Assembly (NCBI GenBank): GCA_002104905.1
Contig: MCFE01000239.1
Location: 55,624 to 119,623 of the forward strand
Direction of reading: 5' to 3'
DNA: 64,000 nucleotides
From: Basidiobolus meristosporus CBS 931.73
Lineage: Eukaryota > Fungi > Basidiobolomycota
Shown: positions 54,901-64,000 of the stretch, piece by piece
Layout of the letters: the number at the start of each line of letters is the position of its first letter
Numbering within the stretch: position 1 is the stretch's first letter
Notes under the pieces: generated by a model
What the model saw: only the letters and a program-made list of their open reading frames with translations
Told to the model about the DNA's origin: nothing
The model's database searches: none
Made by a program: the position numbers and the translations under genes

Positions 54901-55782
54901 TCACTTGATCTCAATTGCGGCAAGATCTGTATTGAGGTCATTCATCGGGGTAAGTTCACTGGACTTCCAACCTTTTGAGCGCCATAGGTGCGATCTCCAG
55001 ATCTGCTCAGTCATTAATTTGCAAGATACAGCCCCTGGAACAATAGGTTAGTATTCTGGTGAGGAGGTTGGCGCACCACATAAAAGCTACTCACATCCAA
55101 TGCTGAATAGATCCTTATGACCCATTACATTGGTAAACTTCAGGATTACAATGAAGAAATAGAACAGGCAAACGGACAACAAGAAGATCAGCCCATCCTT
55201 TATGAGAAAGGAATAGATCGCCCGAGGAGACTCTTTGTATTGTAGGTAGATAATGTTCAAGAACAGAATCGTCAGGAACATGGTGATCATCGTCTCAACT
55301 ACGATTGGGATGAGCATTTCGTACGATTTTGCTAGGCTGGTGCATATGTCTACCGTTATACCTATACGAAAGATCTTCACATCCGCGATAAGCTTGATCC
55401 ACATTGCCAAATGCAACAGCCTAAATATAATGTAGATTGAGGTGAGGAGCTTTGGTCTCTTGTTGACTGACTTTGCCTTGAGATACAGTATGGTGTCCAT
55501 TGATATCACGCTGATGGTGAAGGTGATAGCGAAAACCAAATAGCGAGCTCTACAAGGGAGATTATTGACGAAGCACCCACACAGCTGAACAACCGAATTG
55601 AACAGAAGGAGAACTGCAGGTATTAAGTTCAACTTGAATATCGGATGCTTATTGTGCATAACCGTAATGATGCTGCGGTATATAGTGCTTATAGCAACAG
55701 GAATTGACATGGAAGCAATTACTAAGCCAATATCGTGGTGCAAGACTGGATTCTGGGACGCTAACGGTATTTCACTGGCCAT
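54901..55782 (-). CDS. Multi-pass (about 7 TM) GPCR-like membrane protein, 2 exons
   Basis: Hydrophobic ORF 55087-55782. An intron after FSIGW (gtgagt...ttccag) gives a final exon AVSCKLMTEQIW...AAIEIK*. Confidence 0.65.
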
Positions 55783-56985
55783 CTGTGTACCTATTCAAGA
55801 GCTATTTTGATAAAAATGTACCGATTCTGTAATGTCGAAAAAAGGACGAGGAGAGAAGTGCATGCAAATCCAAAATTATTGATGGAGTGCTGAAACCGAT
55901 TATCTAACATTTATACTTGTGCCAAGATATGTATAGCCTATTACTGGCTATTGCAAATAAAGAAACTTCTCTGGTTTATTTGAGCCATATATCGACTCAC
56001 CCGAAGATGGAAAACGCCCACACAATCAACACCAGCATTAATGGCTAGACGTGGGCATAAGGGCTGCCGGAATTCTATTGGAGCAGGTGAAAGTGGGAGG
56101 AAAGTAGCGCTGAGTAGCCCAGTCTTCTTGCCATTCCCGCAATATTTCATGAGTGCAGTGACCTGGTCGGGCTGAACAGATACGTCGGTAACGTTAAATA
56201 CAGATGATAGGCTTATAGAAGGATAGCATCCCCTGGATGCAGAGTACATTTTCAATATTCTTCATATGACTATATTAAAGACCCCTTAAGGTAATCGAGC
56301 ATTCCAAAACGATTGCACTGTTTTTGCTCAAATATCAACACGTTCACGTTGATGGATATTAGGTTCTGATACGCTATGATCATTTTCCACCAGAAATAAT
56401 AAGTCCACGTGGTGGTAACGACGGTATGGTTCTATCCATCCATCACCGTGCTCGAGGTAGATGAGTAGGTATTGCTTATTATATAATACTTTACAAGGAT
56501 ATAGGTCTCATTGTGGCCAACAATTTAGTTTCTATTTACCAATATGCTTGAAGATTTGAAAACGCTCATTTAGGGAAAGAGGAGGGAAAGTTACCAAGTT
56601 AGTAAACTCTTGAATTTAAATCAATATGGGTCTAAATGCAAGATGACGAAGCCAAGCGCTGCATGGGTAGCTTGCTCAAAAGTAAATAAAAAAATGGCCA
56701 TTTTGGGGAAGCCTATCAGAAAGGTCATCAAGTTTGCCATATGAAAAATATCATACATGGAATTCATATGATATTCTGCTGGTATTCTGACGGTATTTTA
56801 CAGGATTTCAGCTGGTGTTTTTCCTTCAATTTTTGAGCTGTAAATAATAGTGGAAGTAGTAGGTAGCCTATTACCAACTTTGGTATGAAGGTTAAGTAGC
56901 AGGAAAACTAGTGTAATTTATTTGATGCCAGAGTATCCAGAACTGGATTTTTATCATAAATGCTAATAGAGTGGGTAGTTGAAAT

Positions 56986-57670
56986 TGTTGTAAAAAACTT
57001 GCAATTCCACCTAAATATTCACCTACCTTGATCACTTAGATCATTGCCTACAAATCTTAGTGAATACTGACCAAATTCCTTGTTGGGATTTACTTTGAGA
57101 ATTTTCTTGTTCTGGGTACCTGATATTTTGGTGAAAATACTCTAAGTTGTCCAAACTGCCTCAAGCTTTGCAAACATATTCTTGGGACCTTCCTGAGCTG
57201 ATTCTACATGTTTGTAATGCCAAGACCATGTAAATGAATAAGTACTACTTTTCCATTCATAAATCATTAAGTGAAAACCACATAATCTACTTGCACTCCC
57301 AATCACTTTCAATATCTCCAGAACTCTTACATCAGGTTATGAGTTGCAAGCTGTCACTCTCTGCAATGTCTACTACTGCTATTGCTGGAATTTTTCCCTC
57401 TGCTGAAAAGTTGGATGGATCTAACACCAAGTGTGGAAGGTGAAGATAAAGATACTGTAACAAGAAAGAGGCCTTTAGGATATTGTTATTGGAGAAGAGT
57501 GCTCTCCTAAAAACATAAGAGAGGGAGCCTTCAAGTACCAGAAGAAAAAACAAAGTGCCTTTAACTGTGTTTGCCCTAATGTTAGAGACAAATTGCAATT
57601 CAATGCTCTAGAGCAAACACCAACCAATCATGTTTAGCTGCTAAGAAAATGTATCTTGGATGCAAATGCC
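56986..57670 (+). mobile_element. Copia LTR (56986-57334) + PBS GGTTATGAG + start of gag, truncated at 57670
   Basis: Collinear with 18914-19630. It ends abruptly where the telomeric array begins. Confidence 0.85.
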
Positions 57671-58590
57671 TAGGGGAGGGAAAGTAACCAAGGTAGGTGA
57701 AATCTTTATTTGATTTCAGACAAGTCTAACTACAAATAAAGAAGCCAGCTGGGAATAGAAGATTCCCAAAGTAAACACCAAGTTGAATATGAATAAATCT
57801 AAGCTAAAGTTAAATCAGTATCCCAGAGTACACCAGAGCTCAGGTTCATGGGGAGTGAAGTAGATAAGCTTGAGAGATATAATAATCTTTCAGGAAGTGG
57901 GTAACAGCAGGTGAAGGGGAGTTTTTGATAAGTGAAGTGAATCTTGAGAGCAGAGATTCCTCTAATGAGAAGGTCTTGTAAACTGGAGAATCAGGAAACT
58001 CTTTAAAGGCATGGTCAGTAGGTTCCCAGTAAAACTGGTCAGAGACATTTTGAGAGAATTCTTTAGCAATACTTTTGTCAAGTACTACCTCCAGAGTGTG
58101 ATGGCTCATAAATCTCATGTTAACAATCTTGATAAGTTGTAACCTTGTTGCTTGAGATACATCCTATGCTCAGATATAGGAATAAACTCCACATTGGCAA
58201 AGTAGCAGACAACCCAGTCAGTAGCAGGAGGCAAATCAGAGGTGGCAGGAGACTTTCTTTTAGTCTTGGGAGGAGCAGCAGGATGGCTTGCGGAAGCAGG
58301 AACAGACTTTTTGACAGCTCCAGAGTAGGAAGAGTGAGCAGAAGCAGATGCCTTTTGTGGAGTCTTGTTGGCAGGAAGAGTTGGCACAGGGACAATAGAT
58401 TCTTGCAGATCAGAGAAGGCAGACAACAGCTTTTGAACTTGTTTCTTGAGTAGAGCATTTTCAGCTTCAACAAGTACAAGCCTTTCCTCCAGGAAAGAAA
58501 TATGAAGGGAATGGAGTGAAGGCATAAGAAATAAGAAGAAGAGGGTAGGAAAGGGTGGATGGGTAGGAAAATTAGCGGGGAGAAGAGAAG
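57671..58590 (-). mobile_element. Telomeric unit A1: gag/ORF1-only element with its own 3' terminus and pyrimidine-rich 5' leader
   Basis: 3' signature at 57671-57750, ORF 58525-57799, no RT within the unit, bounded by GGTTAGGG at 58591. Confidence 0.75.
57799..58525 (-). pseudogene. ORF1/Gag-like protein of about 242 aa (coiled coil, SYSGAVKK, alpha/beta domain) with two 1-bp deletions relative to copy A2
   Basis: MPSLHSLHISFLEERLVLVEAENALLKKQVQKLL heptads. Both frameshifts are in G-runs (tcttgata vs tcttggata; catgggga vs catggggga), so they may be sequencing errors. Confidence 0.65.
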
Positions 58591-59910
58591 GGTTAGGGTA
58601 GGGGGTAGGGGGGGGGAAACCACTGGTTGGTGTAATCTTTATTGTCAATCATTGTGAAAATAAAGAAGTCAGGGATTGATTCTGGAGTCTTGTAACATAT
58701 TTGTACTGACACTTTGGGCTAATATGTAGATAGGTTGCTATTTCTTGTAGTTCCTCTGCATTGAATAGAGTGTTGAGAGGGAGTGGTGGTAGCACTAGCA
58801 ATAATAACTTATGATCTATGTATTGTGATGTGCTTTTGCCAATTGGTGATATAAAGCAAAGAAATGGGGTTTGCTGATTTACATACTCTTGCCATAGTTG
58901 ATAAAGATACTTGCTATATGCTTCTTTGGGGTTTCTTCTCCCCTCTATTGCTTTGACAAATTGCTGGACTTTTGGGCACCCAATGATACTTGTCCAACAG
59001 GAGTTATTTTGAAGCATCTTGCGTGAAACCCATGCTTGTATCAACTCATTTGTTGATTTTTGGAGTTGAATATGTAGTCTTGTATGGAGGTACAAAATTC
59101 TAATTGAATACAGGAGTAGTCCAAAAGTTGCCAGAACTGTGTGGTGATACTGTGTTGGTGGGAGCCATGGTAATAAAGTATAAATGCTGTGAGAAACAAA
59201 CTTGTCCAGTTTTGTCAGGTATCTTGTTGGAATAGGCATTATTGCCAATCCAAACACCAGTACTGGGAGCACAAACTGCTTGAGTAACAAGTGACATTGG
59301 CTCAAAGATAAATCTGGTGGTGTAACAGAGACTAACTTGTGTAAAGCATGCCATGCAAGTGCTATTTGCCTCCACACATGTGCTTTTACATCCAGACCAG
59401 ATGCAGTAAATGGAAGCCCTAGATAGCTGACAGTTTCTGCTGGGTGCAGAGTTTGAGAGTTCAGCATGATACTGCATCCAACTGGCTTGGTTTTTGCCAT
59501 TGAGAGACTAAGATTGTTTTGTGTAAGGTAGCTGACAATCAGGTCAGAGTCTTTTTTCAAATTACTGGAAGAGATACAAATATCATCTGAGTATAGAGTT
59601 GTAAGTGCAGAGGCTTCCAAGGCAGGAAAGTTGTTCATAAAGATGGCAAATAGTAGAGGGCATAGTACAGATCCCTGCACTACCCCATTTGGAACATCAT
59701 AAGTGGTAGATTGCATATTTGGATGCAAAATGTAGGCCTTTGAGTCCTGATATAAAGCCATGATAAGAGCTGTAATTGAAGGTCCAGCAAAAGCTTCAAG
59801 TTTTCTCCAAAGTAGGTTACGGTCAACTGCATCAAATGCATGGGTAATATCCAAGAGTACTGCTGGAAATTTGTTACAGAGTGTGTGGTCATGGCTTAGC
59901 ATCACAGCCA
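58591..59910 (-). mobile_element. Telomeric unit B: 5'-truncated non-LTR retrotransposon RT (ORF 58649-59911)
   Basis: LDITHAFDAVD, GVVQGSVLCPLLF, LYSDD, KT, YLG are RT domains 3-7 of non-LTR type. The ATG is created at the junction with TTAGG. Confidence 0.92.
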
Positions 59911-60458
59911 TTAGGGGGGAGGGAAAGTCACCAAGGTAGGTGAAATCTTTATTTGATTTCAGACAAGTCTAACTACAAATAAAGAAGCCAGCTGGGAATA
60001 GAAGATTCCCAAAGTAAACACAAAGTTGAAAATAAATAAATCTAAGCTAAAGTTAAGGCAGTATCCCAGAGTACACTGGAGTTCAGGTTCATGGGGGAGT
60101 GAAGTAGATAAGCTTGAGAAATATAATAATCTTTTAAGAAGTGGGTAACAGCAGGAGAAGGGGAGTTTTTGATAAGTGAGGTGAATCTGGAGAGCAGAGA
60201 TTCCTCTAAGGAGAAGGTCTTGTAAACTGGAGAATCAGGAAACTCTTTAAAGGCATGGTCAGTAGGTTCCCAGAAAAACTGGTCAGAGACATTTTGAGAG
60301 AATTGTTTAGCAATACTTTTGTCAAGTACTACCTCTAGAGTGTGATGGTTGATAAATCTCATGTTAACAATCTTGGATAAATTATAACCTTGTTGCTTGA
60401 GATACATCCTATGCTCAGATATGGGAATGAACTCCACATTGGCAAAGTAGCAGACAGC
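59911..60458 (-). mobile_element. Telomeric unit A2: 5'-truncated copy of the ORF1-only element (ORF remnant 60042-60437)
   Basis: Highly similar to 57671-58215, with the same 3' signature. Cut at gcagacagc|ttaggg. Confidence 0.85.
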
Positions 60459-61828
60459 TTAGGGTTAGGGGGGAGACAGTCACCAACAGGTGAAATCTTT
60501 ATTTCAGCTGAAACAAAGAAGCCAGCGCTACTGTGGTAGCTTTGATACAAGAGTGTGTAGCTGAGGGGAATTTGTAGGTAAGTTAATAAGAAGTGATGAT
60601 AGTTCTTCAGTGCTAAACACACTGTTCAGTGGGAAGGGGGGTAGCAAGAGAGGTAAGAATGACTTGTGAACAACATTAATGAGGGGAATGTGATAAGGAT
60701 TGATATTCATCATAAAGGGAGTGTGCTGCTGCAGATATTGTTGCCAAAGGTCTGTCAAGTACTTCAGGTAGGCCAGCTTGGGTTTTTCTGACTGCAGAAT
60801 ATAGTGAGCAAACTTCTTGACTTCAGGATCTCCAAGTATAGTTCTCCTGCAGGAGTCAGGTGTAGTGTGGTGTGTTCTCTTCCAGGCCTTAATCAGTGGG
60901 TTGTTGCAGTTGTGAAGTCTGAGGTATAATCTGGTTCTAAGGTAGAGAAGTCTGATCTTATAGGGCATAAACCCAAAAGCACCAAGAATAGCATGTCTGT
61001 AGGGGCATTCAGGCAAATGAGGCACCAAGGAGGTAATGCACCATACTGCAAACTTGTCAAGCTTAGTGCAGTCTCTAGAAGTAAGAGAGAGAAGTGGTAA
61101 GCCAAATTCCAGGACAGGGAAGACAAACTGCTTGAGTAGAAGGAGGCAGCTGGGAGCTGAAGTGGTAGGAGGAGTAACAGCCAGTAGCTTGTGGAGTGCC
61201 TGTCTTGCCAGGATAATTCTCTTCTTCAGGTGTGCTCCAGAGTCTAGTCCAGTAGGAAGGAAAGGAAAGCCAAGATATGTAGCAGAAACCTGAGCAGGTA
61301 GAGTGGAGTTCTCCAAGTTGATGGGAGAGCCCAAAGGTACTGTCTTTGCAATGGAAAGCTGGAGATTATTCTTCTGCAGATACTGGTGGATGGTCTGGGA
61401 GTCTTGTTGCACATTGGAGGAGGAAGTTCTGATGTCATCAGCAAAGAGAGTAACCAGGCAGTCAGCTGAGAGTCTTGGGAAATCACTCAGGAAGATGGCA
61501 AACAGTATAGGACCAAGCACAGAGCCTTGAACCACTCCATTAGGAACTGAGAACACAGCTGATTGCTCACTTGGGTGCAGAATTCTTGCTTGTGGATCCA
61601 GAAACAGAGACCTGACAAGGAGGGTGAGAGAGATACTGGAGAAGCATTGCAACTTGGACCAAAGCAGATTTCTGTCAACTGAATCAAAGGCCTTAGTAAT
61701 ATCAAACAGAACAGAGGGATACTTGCACTGGAAAGAGTGATCTTGGCTAAGTATGACTGCATATTCCAAGGAGAGGCCAGGAACAAAGCCAAACTGTGCA
61801 GGATGAAACTTGAGGGAGTCAGAGTAGA
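60459..61828 (-). mobile_element. Telomeric unit C1: 5'-truncated non-LTR RT, second family (ORF 60528 to about 61828)
   Basis: QFGFVPGLS, FDITKAFDSVD, GVVQGSVLGPILF, FADD, YLG. RT domains 0-2 are missing and no ATG start lies within the unit. Confidence 0.92.
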
Positions 61829-62358
61829 GGGTTAGGGGGGGGAAAGTCACCAAGTGGTGAAATCTTTATTTACTTATGACAAGTATCTAAAGAAGCCAAG
61901 TTAATCTGAAGTAATTCCTAGAAAGCTAGGTCTGAGAGATATCTTCCTGGTAAGCCAGGTCTGAGAGTTGAGAAGCTGAGTGGTACTATATTTCCTAGTT
62001 AGCTAGGTCCGAGAGAGGTTTCCTGGAAAGCCAGGCCTGAGAAGTGAGAATCTGAATATATCTGAGCTAAGTTATCATGGTTTGCGGTAGCGGAATTGTG
62101 GCCAGAATGGCCAGTAGACTGGGGGAACTGAGATGAATTTCTGGGCGATCACTGGCCAAATTTACTAGGCAAATCTGGCCAATTAGCATTTCAAGGATTT
62201 CAGCCAATCAGAGCCTTTACTTTGCCCGATGGTTGATCAAGCCATCTCCCAATGAGCACACATCAATTTATTAATCAAATTTTGCTGGATCCAGGATTTG
62301 AACCCACATCCATGGGTATGGAAGGGTTAGGGATAACCACAAGGCTAAGTGTTCTTGG
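61829..62358 (-). mobile_element. Telomeric unit D1: non-coding tRNA-derived SINE (about 530 bp), apparently full length
   Basis: Minus-strand head TAGCCTTGTGG (A box) ... GGTTCAAATCC (B box) at tRNA spacing. No ORF. Same 3' signature as the RT units. Confidence 0.8.
62294..62347 (-). promoter_or_regulatory. RNA polymerase III type-2 internal promoter (A box 62337-62347, B box 62294-62304)
   Basis: A box is 10/11 to TRGCNNAGYGG and B box is GGTTCAAATCC. There are 31 nt between TGGT and GGTTC, as in canonical tRNAs. Confidence 0.75.
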
Positions 62359-62427
62359 TTAAGGGTTAGGGTTAGGGGGGAGACAGTCACCAACAGGTGA
62401 AATCTTTATTTCAGTTGAAACAAAGAA
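62359..62427 (-). mobile_element. Telomeric unit C2: about 50-nt 3'-terminal stub of family C
   Basis: Matches the C1/C3 3' end up to aaacaaagaag, then switches to ggttaggggg. Confidence 0.85.
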
Positions 62428-62913
62428 GGGTTAGGGGGAGGAAAGTCACCAAGTGGTGAAATCTTTATTTACTTATGACAAGTATCTAAAGAAGCCAAGT
62501 TAATCTGAAGTAATTCCTAGAAAGCTAGGTCTGAGAGATATCTTCCTGGTAAGCCAGGTCTGAGAGTTGAGAAGCTGAGTGGTACTATATTTCCTAGTTA
62601 GCTAGGTCTGAGAGAGGTTTCCTGGAAAGCCAGGCCTGAGAAGTGAGAATCTGAGTATATCTGAGGTGAGTTGTACTGATTTGCGGTAGCTTGTTTGTGG
62701 CCAGAATGGCCAGTAGACTGGGGGAACTGAGGGGTATTTCTGGGCGATCACTGGCCAAATTTACTAGGCAAATTTGACCAATTAGCATTTCAAGGATTTC
62801 AGCCAATCAGAGCCTTTACTTTGCCCGATGGTTGATCAATTTATTGATCAAATTTTGTTGGATCCATGATTTGAACCCACAACCATGGGTATGGAAGGGT
62901 TAGGGATAACCAC
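62428..62913 (-). mobile_element. Telomeric unit D2: second SINE copy, 5'-truncated inside the A box
   Basis: Collinear with D1, with a short internal deletion and a decayed B box (GGTTCAAATCA). Ends at ataaccac|ttaggg. Confidence 0.85.
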
Positions 62914-63789
62914 TTAGGGGGGGAGACAGTCACCAACAGGTGAAATCTTTATTTCAGTTGAAACAAAGAAGCCAGCGCTACTGTTGTAGCTTTGATACAA
63001 GAGTGTGTAGCTGAGGGGAATTTGTAGGTAAGTTAATAAGAAGTGATGATAGTTCTTCAGTGCTCAAGACACTGTTCAGTGGGAAGGGGGGTAGCAAGAG
63101 AGGTAAGAATGACTTGTGAACAACATTAATGAGGGGAATGTGATAAGGATTGATATTCATCATAAAGGGAGTGTGCTGCTGCAGATATTGCTGCCAAAGG
63201 TCTGTCAAGTACTTCAGGTAGGCCAGCTTGGGTTTTTCTGACTGCAGAATATAGTGAGCAAACTTCTTGACTTCAGGATCTCCAAGTATAGTTCTCCAGC
63301 AGGAGTCAGGTGTAGTGTGGTGTGTTCTCTTCCAGGCCTTAATCAGTGGGTTGTTGCAGTTGTGAAGTCTGAGGTATAATCTGGTTCTAAGGTAGAGAAG
63401 TCTGATCTTATAGGGCATAAACCCAAAAGCACCAAGAATAGCATGTCTGTAGGGGCATTCAGGCAAATGAGGCACCAAGGAGGTAATGCACCATACTGCA
63501 AACTTGTCAAGCTTAGTGCAGTCTCTAGAAGTAAGAGAGAGAAGTGGTAAGCCAAATTCCAGGACAGGGAAGACAAACTGCTTGAGTAGAAGGAGGCAGC
63601 TGGGAGCTGAAGTTGTAGGAGGAGTAACAGCCAGTAGCTTGTGGAGTGCCTGTCTTGCCAGGATAATTCTCTTCTTCAGGTGTGCTCCAGAGTCTAGTCC
63701 AGTAGGAAGGAAAGGAAAGCCAAGATATGTAGCAGAAACCTGAGCAGGTAGAGTGGAGTTCTCCAAGTTGATGGAGAGCCCAAAGGTAC
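62914..63789 (-). mobile_element. Telomeric unit C3: terminal 5'-truncated family C copy (ORF remnant 62978-63766)
   Basis: Nearly identical to 60459-61340. Truncated at ggtac|ttaggg, where the telomere starts. Confidence 0.92.
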
Positions 63790-64000
63790 TTAGGGTTAGG
63801 GTTAGGGTTAGGGTTAGGGTTAGGGTTAGGGTTAGGGTTAGGGTTAGGGTTAGGGTTAGGGTTAGGGTTAGGGTTAGGGTTAGGGTTAGGGTTAGGGTTA
63901 GTTAGGTTAGGGTTAGGGTTAGGGTTAGGGTTAGGGTTAGGGTTAGGGTTAGGGTTAGGGTTAGGGTTAGGGTTAGGGTTAGGGTTAGGGTTAGGTTAGG
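63790..64000 (+). repeat. Telomere, (TTAGGG)n, about 35 repeats
   Basis: TTAGGG tandem array at the window end with the G-rich strand running 5'->3' outward. A few TTAG/TTAGG variants near 63898-63906 and at the end. Confidence 0.98.

Follow-up and report, generated by a model that had tools for sequence, protein, structure and literature searches.

What builds a chromosome end at which several kinds of retroelement are stacked beneath an ordinary telomere? The question is raised by the last 64,000 nucleotides of contig C523 (MCFE01000239.1, positions 55624-119623) of the fungus Basidiobolus meristosporus CBS 931.73, the stretch that we call the window; its position 64000 is the end of the contig. 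An earlier note, made from the sequence alone, had described eight antisense retroelement units lying head-to-tail at this end, and we found all eight in place. Named A1, B, A2, C1, D1, C2, D2 and C3, they fill positions 57671-63789 on the minus strand, and repeat finding together with BLAST comparison to full-length copies puts the 3' end on the centromere side in eight of eight. They belong to families that lie at chromosome ends elsewhere in the genome too. We lean towards the view that these families form a telomere-specialized community of retroelements without long terminal repeats (non-LTR elements) that prime reverse transcription on free chromosome ends and are re-capped by telomerase. 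The units, the terminal tract and one example of the 3' module that the units have in common are as follows:

57671-58580, minus strand: unit A1, a near full-length (~0.91 kb) ORF1-only element with a short 5' untranslated region (5'UTR), an open reading frame (ORF) for a coiled coil and C-terminal domain, and the 3' module
58581-59911, minus strand: unit B, a 5'-truncated long interspersed nuclear element (LINE) of a rare, decayed sister family of C
59911-60458, minus strand: unit A2, a 5'-truncated A copy, 95% identical to A1
60459-61829, minus strand: unit C1, a 5'-truncated C with most of the reverse transcriptase (RT) domain, the C-terminal region of ORF2 and the 3' module
60459-60545, minus strand: the 3' module of unit C1, given as the example (alignment A3 of eight tails)
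61830-62360, minus strand: unit D1, a full-length, non-coding element of ~0.53 kb that resembles a short interspersed nuclear element (SINE)
62361-62427, minus strand: unit C2, an abortive C unit of ~50 nt, 3' module only, after TAAGGGTTAGGGTTAG and a G-run
62428-62903, minus strand: unit D2, a D copy short of ~25 nt at its 5' end and with internal deletions relative to D1
62904-63789, minus strand: unit C3, the outermost unit, a 5'-truncated C with an ORF at 62978-63766
63790-64000, plus strand: the (TTAGGG)n tract, at least 35 repeats (at least 211 bp) with few variant units, reaching the end of contig C523

Read on the plus strand, each unit opens with 2-13 telomeric bases (from less than half a repeat to about two), followed by 4-9 G residues, a short family-specific spacer and a shared motif, CACC-loop-G(G/T)T(G/T)AA(A/T)TCTTTATT, and then by the antisense body of the unit. 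The motif has the form TCACC/GGTGA in the C, D and A2 copies of the array. This agrees with the earlier description of the joints as one or two repeats plus a G-run with no target-site duplications (TSDs): none are visible at the array units, and TSDs inside telomeric repeats would be unrecognizable in any case. The statement that most units are 5'-truncated stands for five of the eight, which are clearly so, but A1 and D1 have all or nearly all of their length and very little is missing from D2. Like the telomere that it adjoins, the array is G-rich on its plus strand (GC skew +0.16 to +0.41); the sense-strand composition is 15.8% G versus 27% C, and GGG runs number 85 versus 22 CCC runs.

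The state of the individual units varies. The ORF of A1 is split by a 1-nt frameshift into pieces at 58115-58540 and 57846-58118; compared with a single short-read contig, A1 has one G fewer at each of positions 58130 and 57849, and the ORF is split because of the G missing at 58130. The ORF of B (58649-59911) holds the C-terminal part of the RT, from about motif 3, and the C-terminal region (Pfam RVT_1, E = 4.9e-17). A2 keeps an intact C-terminal part of its ORF (60042-60437) and has two additional bases, GC, at its 5' junction. Unit C1 (RVT_1, E = 1.2e-18) is 98.5% identical to full-length C copies, and its ORF is listed as 60528-61853, with a listed start that passes the C1/D1 junction at 61829. 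The head of D1 contains A/B-box-like motifs and an internal CCCTAACCC; a unique body follows, the 3' module is of LINE type, and 12 of 20 other D copies share the 5' end of D1; D2 shows 90.6% identity over 513 aligned positions. Unit C3 abuts the terminal telomere tract directly and is 99.5% identical to full-length C copies.

To see how these elements are distributed, we used a 15-mer from the tail, GGTGAAATCTTTATT. It has 1765 copies in the 89.5-Mb, 1366-contig assembly versus 0 for a reversed control, so the array motif is not a product of chance. The copies divide into 1610 on the forward and 155 on the reverse strand, and the telomere therefore lies on the right in most contigs. They concentrate in the last few to ~22 kb of the listed contigs–for example, the tails on contig C1 lie at 322950-344688 of 345098–with the reverse copies near contig starts. 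Where there is a long telomere tract, the elements always have it on their 5' side, and the orientation of the motif flips with the telomere: at locus L055, CCCTAA lies on the left and the motif is reversed. Copies are thus confined to telomeric repeats and chromosome ends, in a fixed orientation. In the window, the 57.6 kb inward of the array contains ordinary genes (DNA polymerase gamma, F-box/LRR and BTB genes) and no copy of the A, B, C or D elements or of the tail 15-mer. At six sampled ends the terminal (TTAGGG)n tract is at least 102-243 bp long, and the genome encodes a TERT RNA-binding domain (RBD), found as two exon-like matches above the Pfam cut-off at C935:173109-173423. The picture of outward, single-polarity stacking under a TTAGGG cap in an organism with telomerase, which the earlier note had drawn, is the one that the genome presents, and the clustering of tails at contig ends is what it had proposed to look for. 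Contig C935 also bears an A copy, at 190706-190966.

The other safeguard that it had asked for, a check against misassembly in the raw reads, was made on short-read contigs of two public runs (one sample). They contain more than 100 different joints between a truncated body and the start of a tail, and the junction diversity is therefore present in the raw data and the array is not an assembly artefact. Read depth in these contigs is very high for C, D and A and ~100-fold lower for B. C and D pieces occur as well in a third run, whose label names a different organism from the same study. We also observed many contigs of ~20 kb that seem to be made of array alone, and, at C613:95110-99411 (L059) and C781:57920-67050, plus-orientation arrays far from the contig start; in contig C781 a plus and a minus array face each other ~6 kb apart. 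The arrays in C613 and C781 possibly reflect fold-back assembly, end-to-end fusion or very long arrays.

The C element is ~4.6 kb long and comprises a 5'UTR, ORF1, a single in-frame TGA, and ORF2, which encodes an endonuclease (EN) of the APE fold and an RT. The 5'UTR is ~270-300 nt long and contains CAACCCTAACCCTAA; in one copy (L056) it has a tandem duplication of ~135 nt. ORF1 (502 aa) has a zinc-ribbon-like motif (CPNCG...C.C), a coiled coil and a conserved C-terminal domain. ORF2 is without an ATG of its own and continues the ORF1 frame directly after the single TGA (L035:4251-4269:-, L061-L068), and in a relative, L079, the ORF2 ATG lies 3 nt past the ORF1 stop, which suggests coupling of the two ORFs by readthrough or by termination-reinitiation. 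The recurrent open frame of 922 codons is present in 35 of 95 scored copies, and dozens of C copies have an intact ORF2.

The RT of C matches Pfam RVT_1 with E = 2.6e-25. Searched against PDB sequences, it is closest to human L1 ORF2p (5e-13), followed by a group II intron RT (1e-5) and R2 (0.095), and no telomerase chain matches it at E <= 1. For the endonuclease, Exo_endo_phos_2 matches weakly (E = 2.8e-4), and a phmmer search of the EN region alone against PDB gave no match. We therefore turned to a structural model of the N-terminal 245 residues, made with AlphaFold2 from a six-sequence family alignment (mean predicted local distance difference test score, pLDDT, 78.6). In a fold search the model matches APE1, the TRAS1 endonuclease (1wdu, ranking fourth) and the L1 endonuclease (2v0r) with probability 1.0. 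The catalytic motifs LLNCNS, LCLIDV, YLPPS, GDLNxPH, VDW and SDH are invariant among family members 42-76% identical (residues N8, D33, Y94, D126/N128, D171 and D201-H202); in LCLIDV, an Asp stands at the position where most relatives carry Glu. The model thus points to an APE-type endonuclease at the N-terminus of ORF2, and by its coding sequence C appears to be an autonomous LINE of the APE type. We did not find the motif of a restriction-enzyme-like (REL) endonuclease, and Pfam gave no domain C-terminal to the RT of C. The earlier note had likened the array's polarity to that of the endonuclease-less Athena and Coprina and had named GilM/GilT beside them; a likeness to such endonuclease-less elements is contradicted by this endonuclease and its conserved catalytic motifs.

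C copies look young. Twenty-nine of them on different contigs have a mean identity of 99.46% over 1330 nt, and first-look candidate counts drop from the 3' to the 5' end, from 1542 through 447 (mid-ORF2) and 177 to 66. Together with the intact frames, this sequence pattern makes recent activity probable. The 5' ends of C and A copies are scattered; D copies are mostly full-length.

The remaining families are less independent of C than their bodies had at first suggested. B and C proteins have 49% amino acid identity, and we regard them, on this sequence evidence, as two families of one LINE lineage. B has only ~10 copies in the genome, 84-93% identical and most with stop codons, and its tail is a variant, ...AATAAAGATTACACC..GTGGTTT followed by a C-run and TACCCCCTACCCTAACCC. 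A encodes a single protein of 242 aa (intact copy L047:11-736:-), which aligns to the C-terminal half of the ORF1 protein of C, with its coiled coil and C-terminal domain (34% identity, E = 4e-14); this makes A an ORF1-only element derived from the lineage of C. It has 218 first-look candidates genome-wide, with 98-99% identity. The modelled A/ORF1 protein (pLDDT 66) has a long helix, a linker that is disordered, a beta-alpha-beta-beta-alpha-beta unit and a helical end; a fold search with it gave no match at E <= 0.001 and only weak RRM-like rows, so that an RRM-like reading is only a hint. The idea of four unrelated bodies must accordingly be given up, and what stands is that a LINE encoding an RT occurs together with ORF1-only and SINE-like elements, all with a common 3' module of C-run and TAA.

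D is ~0.53 kb long, has no ORF and ends in the same tail as C; we found at least 365 first-look candidates, mostly full-length. Its head has two box-like motifs, TAGCCTTGTGG and GGTTCAAATCC. It had been called a tRNA SINE, and the SINE-like character with a LINE tail holds up, but the tRNA origin does not find confirmation: ARAGORN reports no sense-strand tRNA in D under default or relaxed (-ps70) settings, Rfam gives nothing beyond chance matches to the D head at E <= 10, the tRNA model not being among them, and an Rfam scan of positions 55000-64000 at E <= 1, with hammerhead and tRNA models included, found no family. The A/B-box-like motifs are the sole basis of the tRNA label; we call D SINE-like because it is short and non-coding and shares its 3' end with a partner LINE.

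In the 5' regions of C and D we also noticed internal C-strand telomere repeats: CAACCCTAACCCTAA in C (L049:1160-1560:-, L056:330-1300:-) and CCCTAACCC in D (window 62325-62335). A finished cDNA would therefore end with GGGTTAGGG close to the new chromosome end, at ~25 nt for the D head and ~150 nt for the C 5'UTR (~25-150 nt overall), where it could possibly serve as a seed for telomerase or for telomere-binding proteins.

The feature common to all these families is the 3' module. It runs from the stop codon through a box (YTGRCTTCTTT; R is G in most families, while the B lineage has A), a variable loop, AATAAAGATT(T/A)CACC, a loop of 4-6 nt, G(G/T)T(G/T), a spacer and the C-run to TAA(CCCTAA)0-2. 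Our alignment of eight tails, from families A, B, C, D and E and one metagenomic relative, has 30 invariant columns. The predicted consensus fold has an 8-bp stem (CUUCUUUAU with AUAAAGA, box-paired) and a 5-bp hairpin (UCACC/GGUGA); neither shows covariation, since both are invariant. By analogy with stringent LINE/SINE partnerships, C presumably supplies the machinery, and B, A and D would ride on it via this module.

The module extends beyond this strain. Close relatives of C are few, with proteins 48-80% identical, and all lie on element-sized metagenomic or Logan contigs; beyond them there is a sharp drop to generic unnamed LINEs with 30-37% identity over the RT, and a protein family look-up returned only a generic APE plus RVT architecture. 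The relatives L079, L080 and L081 (ERZ27274739, ERR14042384 and ERR14127551) are 48-62% identical and have the same layout of ORF1 and ORF2. L081 (58% amino acid identity) is a complete ORF1-ORF2 element that ends in the same module, followed by CCCTAACCCTAACC. Because L081 carries this tail, the telomere-complementary tail is older than the C family, and because the relatives are on contigs from other public samples, the lineage is present outside this strain.

How do new units reach the end? We sampled 116 junctions; the tract lengths come from 111 resolved internal junctions at ~80 loci. The perfect telomeric stretch before the G-run is at most 9 nt long in 102 of the 111 and at least 15 nt in five, with a maximum of 36; the main classes are TTA, GGGTTA and TTAGGGTTA, and at ten junctions there is at most one telomeric base. 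The length of the G-run, 4-10 nt, varies as expected from slippage or a variable register on the C-run. None of the 116 has a T/A run (poly(A)), and all have the G-run (C-run in the sense strand) plus TAA. Outermost units are no different: at four of the six sampled ends, only 3-7 telomeric nt lie on their inner side. Abortive units of 24-109 nt, barely longer than the tail itself, make up 9 of 64 units sampled on other ends, and every one of them is followed directly by a new tail, with exactly TTAG before the G-run in four cases where the aborted end is non-telomeric.

We propose the following route. Since the polarity makes the first cDNA strand a continuation of the G-strand, the primer would be a G-strand 3' end. 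An element RNA terminating in a C-run and then UAA (sometimes UAACCC...) would pair with, or merely abut, the G-strand 3' end at the chromosome terminus, and the RT would copy the RNA outward, often incompletely. The new end would then be reused by a further RNA or extended by telomerase into a normal tract of >100-240 bp. The usual primer would be a free 3' end with at most two telomeric repeats, whether critically short, eroded or freshly synthesized, and a nick at a random site in a long telomere would be a less frequent one. Free-end priming is favoured because internal tracts are tiny compared with the >100-240 bp terminal tracts, and because of the abortive units. Use of the natural 3' overhang as the primer is plausible, and the junction statistics tilt mildly towards it.

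Several points weigh against this route. Among public runs, we found no RNA run containing the region. Conservation of the endonuclease across members as divergent as 42-76% identity indicates that it is probably in use, as in TRAS/SART; Drosophila TART likewise retains an endonuclease. Later insertions that chop all longer tracts could also leave short internal tracts. The order of units is not clearly chronological, with the young A1 inward of the old-looking B, and end-to-end recombination may have shuffled or copied arrays. Mobilization of A and D in trans by C is, for its part, suggested only by their common tail. Some of these points would be explained by a process like that of TRAS/SART, in which ORF2's APE endonuclease would nick TTAGGG repeats on the G-strand, always at one phase, the RNA would pair with the nicked repeat through its C-run/UAA end, and target-primed reverse transcription would follow; the tracts would be short if every recognizable tract had been hit again or if cutting were biased to the tract base. 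This is the alternative that we take most seriously, though we judge it less likely. It accommodates the APE fold with all catalytic motifs intact in divergent members, the TRAS1 endonuclease among the top structural matches, the non-chronological order of A1 and B, and a polarity that, as in TRAS, uses a G-strand primer; in endonuclease-dependent, site-specific LINEs such as SART1, too, the RNA pairs with the target through its 3' end (PMC7265360). Random nicking, however, should leave many intermediate tracts, above all beside the outermost units, and the five tracts of at least 15 nt among 111 are few. Nor does nicking sit easily with the ten junctions that are without any telomeric target, with re-initiation after abortive units truncated inside the tail, or with the internal CCCTAACCC(TAA) sites of D heads and C 5'UTRs, which we did not see interrupted.

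Units might also arrive as trains, if only the first were primed on the chromosome and the RT then switched from RNA to RNA, adding several units per event. Each switch would leave from an RNA 5' end or an abortive stop, and the one or two repeats at a junction would be copied from RNA 3' ends. The R2 and L1 RTs are well known to jump end to end between templates, and such jumping would give discrete junction classes (TTAG, GGGTTAG and TTAGGGTTAG before the G-run), exactly TTAG after the four abortive units with non-telomeric ends, and the 14% of sampled units that are ultra-short. The same junctions are nevertheless expected from repeated end-priming, and most of the switches would have to fall at internal positions of C RNAs; we find this improbable as the main source of arrays. 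Very improbable, in our estimate, is an origin of the arrays mainly by recombination, break-induced replication, segmental duplication between ends, or assembly errors. Homogenization could equally give 99.5% identity, and the oppositely oriented arrays of C613 and C781 far from the contig start would fit such an origin; against it stand 110-116 distinct junction sequences among the sampled tail junctions, the more than 100 joints in short-read contigs, the scatter of 5' truncation points, and the 3'-to-5' gradient of candidate counts, which is a signature of independent reverse-transcription events. Priming on free ends followed by telomerase re-capping remains the reading that we prefer.

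Among known systems, the closest in enzyme set and target are the TRAS/SART elements of Bombyx mori, APE-type LINEs of the R1 clade. Like the Basidiobolus elements, they have an APE-fold endonuclease and RT in ORF2, a separate ORF1 tightly coupled to it, one orientation in telomeric repeats, and hundreds to thousands of copies coexisting with telomerase-type repeats, and in TRAS the polarity of G-strand priming is the same. Unlike them, the Basidiobolus elements end in a C-run and TAA instead of poly(A), have almost no repeat tracts between units, are accompanied by riders (the ORF1-only A and the SINE-like D) and live in a fungus. In array form and in having a gag-only partner, the closest are HeT-A/TART/TAHRE (HTT) of Drosophila: both systems form terminal arrays of head-to-tail, variably 5'-truncated units with 3' ends towards the centromere, both place a gag-only partner beside an RT element that still carries an APE endonuclease, both have a sense-strand compositional bias, and the Basidiobolus pattern resembles the healing of non-telomeric ends. 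In contrast to Drosophila, the array is capped by telomerase-type repeats, which have not been replaced, and a TERT RBD is encoded; the junctions consist of telomeric bases and a G-run and not of poly(A), and there is a SINE-like member. The telomere-complementary 3' end is most like that of Athena and Coprina, which Gladyshev and Arkhipova in 2007 reportedly described as endonuclease-deficient Penelope-like elements at telomeres. These too have 3' ends with reverse-complement telomeric repeats, 5' truncation, short telomeric stretches, the same polarity and a proposed pairing with G-rich overhangs, whereas the Basidiobolus RT is LINE-like and comes with a conserved N-terminal APE endonuclease, and there is no Rfam or hammerhead match.

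In Zepp of Chlorella, which has poly(A) tails and nested insertions, and in GilM/GilT of Giardia, which are without an endonuclease, LINE-like elements likewise form head-to-tail terminal stacks with telomeric repeats added on truncated 5' ends, but neither system has a common C-run/UAA module or a SINE partner. UnaL2 and UnaSINE1 are a stringent LINE/SINE partnership with genome-wide insertion. There, as here, non-autonomous elements carry the conserved 3' module of the autonomous LINE, with a predicted stem-loop; the Basidiobolus partnership differs in being confined to chromosome ends. The fungal elements MoTeR, FoTeR and Cnl1 (CRE/SLACS) encode a REL endonuclease at the C-terminus of their single ORF (PMC12857005). 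They share with the Basidiobolus elements restriction of a non-LTR element to fungal telomeres, telomere-like sequence at the element end, and autonomous and non-autonomous forms (MoTeR1/MoTeR2), and differ in that the Basidiobolus endonuclease is an N-terminal APE, with ORF1 separate and no REL motif found. The Basidiobolus elements thus fail a defining feature of each of TRAS/SART, HTT, Athena/Coprina and MoTeR/FoTeR/Cnl1. In a literature search we found no description of telomeric, subtelomeric or non-LTR retroelements of Basidiobolus and no telomere-specific SINE, in keeping with the earlier note, whose author knew of no described system of such composition. To our knowledge, a SINE-like rider dedicated to telomeres would be the first of its kind.

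Some further observations concern the surroundings of these elements. Another family, F, occurs in the same arrays in the same orientation (L065:1-760; L033:3505-3760, where the telomere is on the right and the element on the minus strand; L027:1694-1711). Its tail, ...CCCAATAAAGCACTAGAA, passes directly into CCCTAA repeats without a C-run or hairpin, and its C-terminal ORF region has a CxxC...H...C motif. Low-copy junction flanks were considered as unique DNA healed by an element, and were dropped as candidates when several of them turned out to lie between element fragments or beside a further family. Just inward of the array, at window positions 56980-57660, there is a different repeat, probably a subtelomeric transposon or repeat, that recurs, 77-90% identical and in either orientation, at many other chromosome ends; 56 nt of it match in inverted form as well. 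At 56560-56615 a degenerate motif resembling the tail (TTAGGGAAAGAGGAGGGAAAGTTACCAAGTTAG...) may be a relic of an older, more inward unit.

Retrotransposons specialized for telomeres are known from few lineages–Drosophila, silkworm, Giardia, Chlorella, rotifers, and some ascomycetes and basidiomycetes–and each of these systems is partial. Here, one organism combines an APE-type LINE, a gag-only partner, a SINE-like rider, a telomere-complementary tail that is not poly(A), active-looking copies and a telomerase cap, in the setting of hundreds of chromosome ends in an early-diverging, culturable fungus. A fungal lineage of the APE type thereby joins a niche that in fungi has so far been held by elements with REL endonucleases. 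The system makes it testable whether a LINE RT can prime on a chromosome end despite telomerase, and what role the endonuclease then has. At its chromosome ends, B. meristosporus seems to make joint use of retrotransposons and telomerase. More speculatively, and we think this less likely than not, retroelement addition could be a regular, host-tolerated or co-opted means of healing and maintaining ends beside telomerase, in which ends without repeats, including breaks, are capped by cDNA and then by telomerase. If that is true, Basidiobolus would be a living intermediate between telomerase telomeres and the retrotransposon telomeres of the Drosophila type, and retroelement capping might help to explain how a genome in ~1366 pieces, many of them telomere-bearing, is tolerated.

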